A DNA stretch of 64,000 bases from positions 29,376,699 to 29,440,698 of the forward strand of contig NC_069001.1 of assembly GCF_001194135.2 (NCBI RefSeq), read 5' to 3'. Each line of letters opens with the position of its first letter. The first letter of the stretch is position 1. The notes under the pieces are model-generated. The model was not told the origin of the DNA, did no database searches, and worked only from the letters and a program-made list of their open reading frames with translations. The DNA is from Octopus bimaculoides. Lineage: Eukaryota. Positions 35,791-37,132 of the stretch are shown here, one piece after another. The position numbers were made by a program, and so were the translations under genes.

Positions 35791-36391
35791 ATTTACTTAC
35801 GTCTCTGACTTCATTGTTGTGCATAATTTGATAGAGTAAATGCCGGACATTAGGTAGTTGACATATTTAGATGTGCACCGTCTTATTGAATCCATTTATG
35901 TATTATGTCGGTTTCTTTCATATTCTAAGGATTGCCGTTTGAGTCTGGAGGATAGCTTCACAATTTAGCTAGATAATGCCACATTTCGGCTCCTGTTCGA
36001 TGCATGTGCATCGCATGTTCCTAGGGACACCATTTAGCCCACATCTTATATTTGAAATCTGCTAAATGGAAACGTGTAAAAGCTTGTTGGGTGGGCCATA
36101 AGTGTGTTTCAAAAGTTCGGTTTAGTCTCGCTGTGCGATGAAAATTTCTGCATCGTTTGAGTTATATAGGTTACTAAGACGCTAATGCAAAGGGCAGTCA
36201 AGTAATTGAACCAAGGAAAATCATGACTGAGATCCATTTATATTTTGATGTGAAAACATTTCTTTACGTTTCCTCATAACTCTATAGAACGAATATGTAC
36301 TAAAATTCTAGGTCTCTGCTTCATAAGAATAGCATTAATGTTTAATAATTAATAGCATTTCAGCCTTTTTTATGTTCTGAGTTCAAATTCT

Positions 36392-36626
36392 TATTTCTTC
36401 ATTGCCCACAAGGGGCTAAACATAGAGGTGACAAACAACGACACACAAACGGGTTAAGTCCATTACATCGACCCAAGTGCGTAACTGATACTTAATTTAT
36501 TGACCCCGAAATGATGAAAGGCAAAGTCGACCTCGGCGGAATTTGAACTCAGATCGTAACGACAGGCGAAATACCACTAAATATTTCGCCCGGCGTGTTA
36601 ACGATTCTGCCAGCTCGACGCCTTTT
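36392..36626 (-). mobile_element. Full-length tRNA-derived SINE, 3' partner of the U6 chimera
   Basis: Minus strand runs from aaaaggcgtcgagctggcagaatcgtt through tctgagttcaaattccgccgaggtcgactttgcc to tttagccccttgtgggcaatgaagaaataa, collinear with the SINE at 51798-52032. Confidence 0.92.
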
Positions 36627-36733
36627 AGAAATATGGAACGCTTCAAGAATTTGCGTGTCATCCTTGCACAGGGTCCATGCTAATCTTCTTTGTATCGTTC
36701 GAATTTTAGAATCTGCACTGCCAAAGCAAGTTC
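36627..36733 (-). pseudogene. U6: U6 snRNA retrocopy, full length
   Basis: Minus strand GAACTTGCTTTGGCAGTGCAGATTCTAAAATTCGAACGATACAAAGAAGATTAGCATGGACCCTGTGCAAGGATGACACGCAAATTCTTGAAGCGTTCCATATTTC aligns without gaps to canonical U6 (about 14 mismatches against vertebrate U6, manual count). The ACAGAGA box is mutated to ACAAAGA. Confidence 0.96.
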
Positions 36734-37132
36734 AAATTCTGCCGAGGCCTTTCGTCGTTTCCGAGTCGATACAATAAGAACCATTTGAACACGGCACTCG
36801 ATTTAACCGATTTAGTCCCTATCGCAAACTTGCTTCAGTTGTGCCAAAGTTTGAAGCCACTGATTACTGTTATTATTATTGTTATCATCATCGTCATCAT
36901 TTTAATGACTTTGGATTCATTGTATCGACAGAACTGCGGCCAAAAATTATATGCGCTGTATTCAGTTATATCATTTGCATTCCATAGTTGATATCCCATA
37001 GGAATCACATTTAAACTTTTGTTTCTTTTCTCATAGCAATTCGATCAAATAAGTGACAGAGATCGAGTGGTAGCTGTTACAGTCTATGCCGTTCCTTTCA
37101 TAATGATTTCCGTATTTTATCCATATGAATAT

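Follow-up and report, generated by a model that had tools for sequence, protein, structure and literature searches.

A bipartite U6 snRNA–SINE retrocopy inserted as one unit into an older SINE of Octopus bimaculoides

Human U6/L1 chimeric pseudogenes were reportedly described by Buzdin in 2002/2003, by Gilbert in 2005 and by Garcia-Perez in 2007, and the R2 non-LTR reverse transcriptase is said, from the work of Bibillo and Eickbush in 2002, to jump end to end between templates. Chimeric RNAs ligated by RtcB precede the human U6/L1 chimeras (Moldovan et al. 2019, PMC6789731). Beyond L1, U6–SINE chimeras have been published for the platypus (U6-Mon-1) and for Anolis (six copies of U6-AnolisSINE2), together with U6-L2 in the platypus and U6-L2 and U6-RTE in Anolis, and the authors invoke template switching by non-L1 LINEs for these fusions (Doucet et al. 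2015, PMC4476161). The snRNA head of SINEU, the U1/U2-headed SINEs of crocodilians, was probably gained by a template switch (Kojima 2015, PMC4494074), and bipartite and tripartite chimeras are known from Magnaporthe (PMC2104539).

The locus described here lies in a 64-kb stretch of Octopus bimaculoides DNA (the window, i.e. the whole stretch analysed) and fits a bipartite U6–retroelement chimera, that is, a Group IV snRNA pseudogene of Doucet et al. 2015 (PMC4476161). Like the platypus and Anolis chimeras, it consists of a sense U6 directly upstream of a tail-LINE-dependent SINE, without poly(A) and with one target-site duplication (TSD); it differs from them in the host, a cephalopod mollusc, in the completeness of the SINE partner and in there being one example in hand. 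Whereas nearly all platypus U6-L2 copies have a 5'-truncated U6 and a TSD of 1–9 bp (PMC4476161), the octopus U6 is nearly full length and its TSD is 12 bp long. With the human U6/L1 pseudogenes (PMC6789731) the locus shares a full-length U6 that extends to the U-tract and runs into a retroelement copy at its 5' end, a TSD and an origin in one event, but the octopus partner is a SINE without poly(A) rather than a variably 5'-truncated L1, and the enzyme would not be L1 ORF2p. The resemblance to SINEU is in the snRNA at the 5' end of a non-autonomous retroposon; SINEU, however, forms families of many copies, with masters and with internal deletions in common (PMC4494074), whereas the octopus element is a single copy with a U6 head and no sign of propagation. 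As in R2 and Magnaporthe (PMC2104539), a continuous cDNA would run over separate RNAs, with the junction at template ends and few or no extra nucleotides, although those systems are in vitro or fungal. The locus adds a new animal group to a known kind of chimera and does not reveal a new mechanism, and the preliminary description overrated its novelty, U6–SINE chimeras having already been published for the platypus and Anolis (PMC4476161).

Table 1. Features of the U6–SINE insert, its target and a second chimera; positions are those of the window.
Feature	Position	Strand	Remarks
TSD, 5' side of insert	36729..36740		AGTTCAAATTCT on the + strand; 36729-36733 overlap the U6 5' end
TSD, 3' side of insert	36380..36391		exact copy of AGTTCAAATTCT
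U6 snRNA retropseudogene, near full length	36627..36733	-	Rfam RF00026
Full-length 235-nt Octopus SINE (SINE_A)	36392..36626	-	consensus positions 1-235, 90.6% identity
Older target SINE, left half	36344..36391	+	consensus ~42-89; blastn, alignment, empty-site reconstruction
Older target SINE, right half	36729..36818	+	consensus ~78-176, about 72% identity
Second bipartite chimera, SINE_A + SINE_B	51786..52237	+	bracketed by TATTAGAATTT at 51786 and 52227

On the minus strand, U6 (36733-36627) is followed by the SINE (36626-36392) with 0 bases between them: the U6 copy ends in ...GTTCCATATTTCT, the very next base opens AAAAGGCG, the 5' end of the SINE, and the junction reads ...GAAGCGTTCCATATTTCT on the U6 side and AAAAGGCGTCGAGCTGGCAG... 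on the SINE side. The absence of a spacer had been claimed from the outset; the direct abutment stands, but it is exact only to within 1–3 A residues because the number of leading As varies among copies of the SINE. U6 is thus fused in sense orientation to the 5' side of the retroelement copy, and a single TSD surrounds the pair, with none around either part alone. The TSD copies are an exact 12-nt direct repeat with a spacing of 349 nt, the sole direct repeat of at least 10 nt within 36300-36820. Among random, non-low-complexity placements with the same spacing within the window, 2 of 15,705 had a word of at least 12 nt common to the two 25-nt flanks, a chance of about 1e-4. Inspection of the flanks by reading revealed no repeats belonging to U6 (flanked by ...TTTGAACT and AAAAGGCG) or to the SINE (flanked by ...ATATTTCT and AGAATTTG) on its own; solitary SINE_A copies have TSDs of roughly 11–21 bp. 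The bases that Rfam assigns to the 5' stem of U6, 36733-36729 (GAACT), double as the end of the TSD, so that as many as 5 nt may be missing from the U6 5' end, which would have been joined by microhomology. Both the 12-bp duplication and its overlap with the U6 5' end by up to 5 nt had been part of the preliminary description and are borne out.

The U6 part matches the whole of its Rfam model (92.5 bits against a gathering score of 44, E 1.7e-22, model positions 1-105 of 105), and the alignment runs to the last model position at the native 3' end ATATTTCT, i.e. the mature U-tract, which agrees with the natural 3' terminus first noted for this copy. U6 is the only family that reaches its Rfam gathering score in the window, and blastn detects no other U6 there. 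Sub-threshold Rfam matches to miRNAs and scaRNAs in the window were dismissed, being located in microsatellites, and a bacterial promoter/terminator scan was set aside as irrelevant to a eukaryotic Pol III element. The copy carries 14 differences from canonical U6, its ACAGAGA box is mutated to ACAAAGA, and the upstream sequence, which is that of the old SINE, contains by reading no TATA element, including near -30. The covariance model is matched, but a functional U6 gene would have an intact ACAGAGA box along with a TATA element and a proximal sequence element upstream; the ACAAAGA box and the lack of an upstream TATA element rule out such a gene, and the copy is a dead pseudogene for which no function is expected.

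The SINE partner was compared with a 235-nt SINE_A consensus derived from nine copies (from the window and from O. bimaculoides and O. vulgaris loci). It starts with (A)nGGCG and ends with the family's canonical tail, GAAGAAATA, both ends agreeing with eight other copies and recurring in those at 51797-52032 of the window, 10142-10375 of locus L002 and 10230-10462 of locus L003, so the SINE is complete, as had been stated. SINE_A has the hallmarks of a SINE: it is short, non-coding and present in many copies, carries TSDs and ends in a LINE-type tail; 43 SINE hits were obtained in 181 kb from two Octopus species, namely the window plus a further 117 kb from loci of O. bimaculoides and O. vulgaris. 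The description of this SINE as tRNA-derived is not confirmed. The head is not recognisable as a tRNA, given that ARAGORN reports none and that Rfam yields no tRNA match at E<=1 in the window or at E<=10 on the youngest SINE_A copy; by eye, only motifs resembling an A box, TGGCAGAAACG, and a B box, GAGTTCAAATTCC, can be made out, and an acceptor-like stem is predicted in the fold. The tail module is also found in an unrelated SINE (L003, 2273-2440), and because it is common to unrelated SINE families, SINE_A was presumably mobilised by a LINE with specificity for a particular 3' tail; such a partner would bear ...TAGCCCCTTGTGGGCAGTAAAGAAATA at its 3' end. Reverse-transcriptase-like reading-frame fragments discerned by eye at ~11.9-12.4 kb, considered as a candidate partner LINE, gave no Pfam match, and the 3' side of that element is unlike the SINE tail.

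When the insert is removed (36391 joined to 36741), the rebuilt empty site, TTATGTTCTGAGTTCAAATTCTGCCGAGG, matches SINE consensus positions 68-96 in one unbroken alignment; the target was accordingly one older plus-strand SINE, just as the preliminary description had it. Divergence amounts to 7.2% in the invariant core of U6 (6/83) and to 9.4% from the consensus in the SINE partner, comparable ages for the two parts, and to about 28% in the target SINE. That U6 and the SINE were pasted into the older SINE by one retrotransposition event is well supported at the sequence level, because the two parts are similarly decayed, the target is far older and neither part has a duplication of its own; together with the single TSD and the restored empty site, this upholds the earlier claim of insertion as one unit. 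A divergence of 9% would place the insertion roughly near the split of O. bimaculoides and O. vulgaris, if the rate of PMC13282606 applies.

With slightly better than even confidence, the locus would be a dead-on-arrival bipartite retrocopy that arose in one LINE-mediated insertion via a template jump from the SINE RNA to U6. The following succession of steps is inferred, as are the template jump and the enzyme involved. The plus strand of the old SINE would have been nicked after ...AGTTCAAATTCT, and reverse transcription would have started from the resulting 3'-OH, with the GAAGAAAUA tail of a SINE_A RNA as template. The enzyme would then have copied this RNA up to its native 5' end and, instead of stopping there, jumped end to end to a mature U6 snRNA, entering it at the 3' U-tract and falling just short of the U6 5' end. 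Finally, the cDNA would have been joined to the upstream target DNA via 2–5 nt of microhomology, leaving the 12-bp TSD. An end-to-end jump predicts a partner that reaches its native 5' end, and the SINE does, as other copies do. The U6 examples in hand number one, too few for junction statistics.

Composite elements are not confined to this insert. Five head-to-tail SINE–SINE pairs occur among the 43 SINE hits, and four of the five are bracketed as pairs by TSDs (11, 17, 14 and about 19 nt). In the second chimera of Table 1, a full-length SINE_A (51797-52032) is fused to a 5'-truncated SINE_B (52033-52227) that starts near consensus position 18. The upstream SINE of each pair has its end precisely at the canonical tail, the starting point of reverse transcription; this fits re-initiation by the enzyme and not ligation of natural RNA ends. 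The junctions and the simple 5' truncations concentrate at SINE positions 48-58, adjacent to a hairpin predicted to be stable, and this clustering suggests stalling that may be followed by termination or a switch. The pairs indicate that the machinery moving these SINEs often makes a continuous cDNA from separate templates. They show chimera-making machinery in this DNA and are no proof that the U6 junction originated in the same way. The earlier inference that a process joining U6 to retroposons acts in this genome is a reasonable one.

RNA ligation ahead of retrotransposition, in which the 2',3'-cyclic phosphate of U6 would be joined by RtcB or a similar ligase to a 5'-OH SINE RNA and the product mobilised via the SINE tail, is an unlikely route, albeit one that accounts for much of the structure. 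The mature 3' end fits it equally well, U6 stopping at its U-tract and the SINE following without intervening bases, as does the one-unit TSD; moreover, human cells contain RtcB-dependent U6/L1 chimeric RNAs, and RNAs other than L1 can also be ligated to U6 (PMC6789731). The SINE partner, however, starts at the same 5' end as ordinary copies, and because this end sits where Pol III should initiate, immediately before the A-box-like motif, the SINE RNA would presumably carry a 5' triphosphate. Such a triphosphate on the acceptor RNA strongly reduced RtcB ligation in vitro (PMC6789731) and would hamper the reaction here, so the route known from human cells is less compatible with the native 5' end of the octopus SINE. 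Furthermore, a cyclic-phosphate donor cannot account for the SINE–SINE pairs in the same DNA. RtcB ligation, put forward in the preliminary description, is accordingly less likely than a template jump.

It is very unlikely that the copy belongs to a propagating, multicopy family of U6-headed SINEs akin to SINEU, as had also been raised for the case of many copies. U6 transcription depends on promoter elements lying upstream, where this copy shows no TATA element, and the internal boxes of the SINE would start transcription at the SINE 5' end, omitting U6. A second U6 was found neither in the window nor in the 117 kb of other Octopus DNA, and among the 43 SINE hits no other SINE_A hit is accompanied by U6, the 181 kb being a small sample of an Octopus genome of about 2.7 Gb. 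The combination of an snRNA head, a SINE body and a tail does resemble SINEU (PMC4494074), and the O. vulgaris annotation includes a SINE 'U' (369 kb) and a 'U-L1', the snRNA being unnamed there (PMC13282606).

Searches of sequence collections yielded no further U6–SINE copies within their respective scopes. The junction pattern TTCCATATTT N0-8 AAGGC NNN GAGCTGGCAGAA had 0 matches in metagenome contigs, as did a SINE-core control; this collection is without octopus DNA, and its zero carries no weight. The two junction-spanning reading frames have no exact protein on record. When their translations were compared with proteins, the 120 listed of 195 matches were U6-only frames that showed no similarity to the SINE part on realignment; these 120 frames apparently come from other eukaryotes. 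A profile of the SINE reading frames with the U6 3' part gave nine protein matches (six named Octopus proteins and three unnamed Logan products), none of which contains U6, in a database with almost no octopus genomic reading frames. These matches point to the genus Octopus, as does the occurrence of the same SINE in the O. bimaculoides and O. vulgaris loci, and they gave access to the further 117 kb.

A further explanation, read-through, would have a SINE_A at the terminator of a genuine U6 gene and a Pol III co-transcript retrotransposed via the SINE tail, with a product that would look identical to the observed structure. The T-tract, TTTCT, is without a run of four Ts and could represent a weakened terminator, but its C may be a later mutation, because the copy has six other substitutions in the core. 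Read-through also needs a SINE inserted, to the nucleotide, where a 5-nt U-tract ends, a point that matches the length of mature U6, and no U6 gene with an abutting SINE_A was seen in the 181 kb sampled, making this origin highly unlikely. Two independent insertions that happen to abut, in either order, are still harder to credit. Although SINEs of this genome often insert into or beside other SINEs, the second insertion would have had to hit the boundary exactly and a lone U6 has no tail recognised by a LINE; the single TSD encloses both parts and neither has a repeat of its own, whereas solitary SINE_A copies do have duplications, and U6 and the SINE are similarly diverged. An assembly artefact joining unrelated U6 and SINE reads is barely conceivable: the scaffold behind the window is indeed gapped (12 runs of N), and one O. 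bimaculoides locus has a duplicated SINE segment around a 10-N gap, but some 2.3 kb to either side of the insert contain no N (closest runs at 29894-29903 and 39019-39305), U6 and the SINE have no common sequence to cause a false join, and an exact TSD together with a restored old SINE marks a real insertion.

The octopus locus extends the record of U6–retroelement chimeras from mammals, the platypus, a lizard and a fungus to a lophotrochozoan, and supports the view that fusions of U6 with retroelement RNA arise generally as a side product of non-LTR retrotransposition. With its full-length SINE partner, the locus would be informative on template jump versus RNA ligation, given a genome-wide set. 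It is improbable, if worth bearing in mind, that Octopus harbours many U6–SINE fusions, either as a propagating U6-headed lineage, possibly kin to the O. vulgaris SINE 'U', or as the steady output of an unusually jump-prone LINE reverse transcriptase; if so, that enzyme would also make >10% of SINE insertions dimeric and drive the modular evolution of mollusc SINEs. The frequent SINE–SINE pairs suggest that the octopus SINE machinery readily builds composite elements, which bears on the origin of the very abundant and diverse SINEs of octopuses.

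Read on the minus strand, the locus consists of an old SINE, ...cggcAGAATTTGAACT, a U6 copy, a further SINE, AGAATTTGAACTcagaac... and the old SINE again (Table). U6 is the only Rfam family to exceed its own gathering score in the 64-kb window; the additional matches from a permissive scan are all sub-threshold, microRNA-like and derived from TA-rich microsatellites, and blastn finds no second U6 in the window. Such microsatellites (with YIYI... reading frames) also border several of the assembly gaps in the window, which contains 12 runs of N (e.g. 4831–5369, 8134–8541, 10358–11085 and 39019–39305). 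As the preliminary description had it, the U6 copy reaches its natural 3' terminus (...GTTCCATATTTCT, with the adjoining base opening AAAAGGCGTCGAGCTGGCAG) and its 5' end overlaps the target-site duplication (TSD) by up to 5 nt: GAACT (36733–36729) is common to the TSD and the Rfam U6 5' stem, in which one pair is non-canonical, so that U6 is either complete or lacks at most 5 nt through microhomology joining. Compared with canonical U6, whose sequence agrees with the Rfam consensus, the invariant core (positions 25–107) carries 6 mismatches in 83 positions (7.2%). Several changes in the copy are CpG-to-TpG transitions, and ACAAAGA replaces the ACAGAGA box; upstream lies old SINE sequence with no TATA element. 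The copy is a pseudogene.

The SINE fused to U6 belongs to SINE_A, a 235-nt Octopus subfamily whose consensus was built from nine copies. It differs from this consensus at 22 positions (9.4%), has kin at a dozen sites within the window (blastn), and shares both its start (AAAAGGCG) and its end (GAAGAAATA) with the same-subfamily copy at 51797–52032. The partner had been described as a complete tRNA-derived SINE joined to U6 with no spacer. The completeness and the direct abutment hold, the latter to ~3 nt only because SINE_A copies start with one to four A's, but the tRNA origin is less secure: ARAGORN detects no tRNA, and Rfam yields no tRNA match in the window at E<=1 or in the youngest SINE_A copy at E<=10, whereas the head contains A-box-like and B-box-like motifs (identified by eye) and the predicted fold includes an acceptor-like stem, along with a long hairpin at positions 36–62.

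Coordinates of the chimera, of head-to-tail SINE pairs and of breakpoints at SINE positions 48–58 (A, SINE_A; B, SINE_B, another subfamily; L001, O. bimaculoides locus; L002 and L003, O. vulgaris loci)
Feature	Location	Strand	Parts or match	Flanking repeat
U6	window 36733–36627	-	Rfam RF00026, 92.5 bits (gathering score 44), E 1.7e-22, model positions 1–105/105	
SINE_A of chimera	window 36626–36392	-	235 nt, consensus positions 1–235	
TSD copies	window 36380–36391 and 36729–36740		direct repeat	AGTTCAAATTCT
SINE pair	window 51786–52237	+	51797–52032 (A 1–235), 52033–52227 (B 18–218)	TATTAGAATTT at 51786 and 52227
SINE pair	L003 10214–10663	+	10230–10462 (A 3–235), 10463–10646 (A 52–235)	17 nt, one mismatch, at 10214 and 10647
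SINE pair	L001 65978–66423	-	66370–66212, 66209–65992	14 nt, three transitions
SINE pair	L003 12640–12995	-	12973–12757 (B, full), 12747–12662 (B 2–87) after 9 nt	~19 nt, imperfect
SINE pair	L003 5670–6119	-	6119–5888, 5886–5670 (A 19–235)	none clear
Breakpoints at 48–58	e.g. window 17080, 18325; L003 6422, 10463; L001 40784, 61888, 66370			

A profile search with the SINE reading frames returned nine protein matches, six from O. vulgaris or O. bimaculoides and three Logan products, which identifies the genome as that of an Octopus; three of the matched proteins led to 117 kb of DNA (L001–L003) that contains more SINE copies and brings the sample to 181 kb. At L001 40798–40784, a SINE segment is duplicated around a 10-N gap, probably an assembly artefact. 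The final ~40 nt of SINE_A (...TAGCCCCTTGTGGnCAGTAAAGAAATA, ...TAGCCCCTTGTGGACAGTAAAGAAATA) also close an unrelated SINE (L003 2273–2440, minus strand) with a tRNA-like head of its own. Tails taken over from a LINE that recognises one specific 3' end should show such sharing, and the common sequence points to a LINE-derived module in both SINEs. Degenerate reading-frame pieces resembling a LINE reverse transcriptase (e.g. ...VIYLDFANNFHKFDHGMICHKLRDVGIAGKLG..., ...GVPQDTIMGPLLF...) lie on the minus strand at ~11300–12700 of the window; they have no Pfam match, and the 3' side of this element is unlike the SINE tails. Elsewhere in the window, a 339-nt inverted repeat (3137–3475 and 3938–4276; arms 98% complementary, 462 nt apart) could be a young foldback/MITE-like element or an inverted duplication.

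The proposal that U6 and the SINE were inserted as one unit is supported. The 12-bp TSD is the sole direct repeat of at least 10 nt within 36300–36820, and sharing of at least 12 nt occurred by chance in 2 of 15,705 non-low-complexity trials (two random 25-nt flanks at this spacing); solitary SINE_A copies have TSDs of roughly 11–21 bp. Removal of the insert does restore an older plus-strand SINE: with 36391 joined to 36741, the alignment with SINE consensus positions 68–176 is unbroken (72% identity), so that the target was a single, much older element. No separate repeat surrounds U6 (flanks ...TTTGAACT and AAAAGGCG) or the chimera SINE (flanks ...ATATTTCT and AGAATTTG), and the divergence of the U6 core is close to that of the SINE. 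The old SINE was cut within its B-box-like segment, GAGTTCAAATTC. At L003 12662 a truncated piece of an unrelated SINE terminates at this motif too, so cleavage or priming may favour it.

Five head-to-tail pairs occur among the 43 SINE hits in the 181 kb. The one at 51797–52227, a full-length SINE_A joined directly to a 5'-truncated SINE of the other subfamily, is the second bipartite chimera in the window; outside it, three of the four pairs are bracketed by imperfect TSDs of 14–19 nt. Within the pairs, the upstream member stops precisely at the canonical tail from which reverse transcription begins, which fits re-initiation on a second RNA and not a joining of natural RNA termini. Junctions between pair members, like simple 5' truncations, recur at SINE positions 48–58, beside the predicted stable hairpin; this clustering suggests stalling followed by termination or template switch, and these positions may be a reverse-transcriptase stall site.

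Against this background, the U6–SINE structure is as expected from an end-to-end jump of the reverse transcriptase: passage from the SINE 5' end to the U6 3' end would yield it, and on balance a template jump probably made the chimera. Doucet et al. read U6 chimeras with L2, RTE, Mon-1 and AnolisSINE2 in the same way (PMC4476161). In the RtcB route, established for human U6/L1 (PMC6789731), U6 that ends in a 2',3'-cyclic phosphate is ligated to a 5'-OH RNA, but a 5' triphosphate on the acceptor strongly lowered ligation (PMC6789731) and the chimera's SINE has a native 5' end, presumably the primary-transcript start, so that this route is possible but rather unlikely here.

A U6-headed SINE family, envisaged should the junction prove multicopy, finds no support in the small 181-kb sample, which contains one U6, all other SINE_A hits being without it; a propagating family is very doubtful. 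Mechanistically, U6 at the head of a SINE would contribute a poor promoter. The metagenome collection lacks the junction and the SINE core alike, exact-protein look-ups of junction-spanning reading frames were empty, and among the matches listed from protein searches with their translations all were U6-only frames that seem to come from other eukaryotes. Repeats annotated in O. vulgaris include one SINE 'U' family (369 kb, 19 recent insertions; snRNA not specified) and one family classed 'U-L1' (PMC13282606). A read-through transcript of a U6 gene abutted by a SINE is highly improbable. Sequential insertions, with one TSD around both parts, are still less credible, and misassembly is the least credible of all; runs of N are absent within ~2.3 kb of the insert.

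TSD-flanked U6–SINE chimeras are known from platypus, with Mon-1 as the partner, and from Anolis, where six involve AnolisSINE2 (PMC4476161). A human catalogue covers Alu/L1 chimeras and those of other small RNAs (PMC11838501), Magnaporthe has bipartite and tripartite chimeras (PMC2104539), and SINEU is a case in which an snRNA head gave rise to families (PMC4494074). Searches of the open-access literature yielded no report of such chimeras from cephalopods, for which the preliminary description too knew of none, or from other molluscs; the kind is already known and the phylum is new. The frequent TSD-bracketed SINE–SINE pairs are the more promising genome-wide lead.
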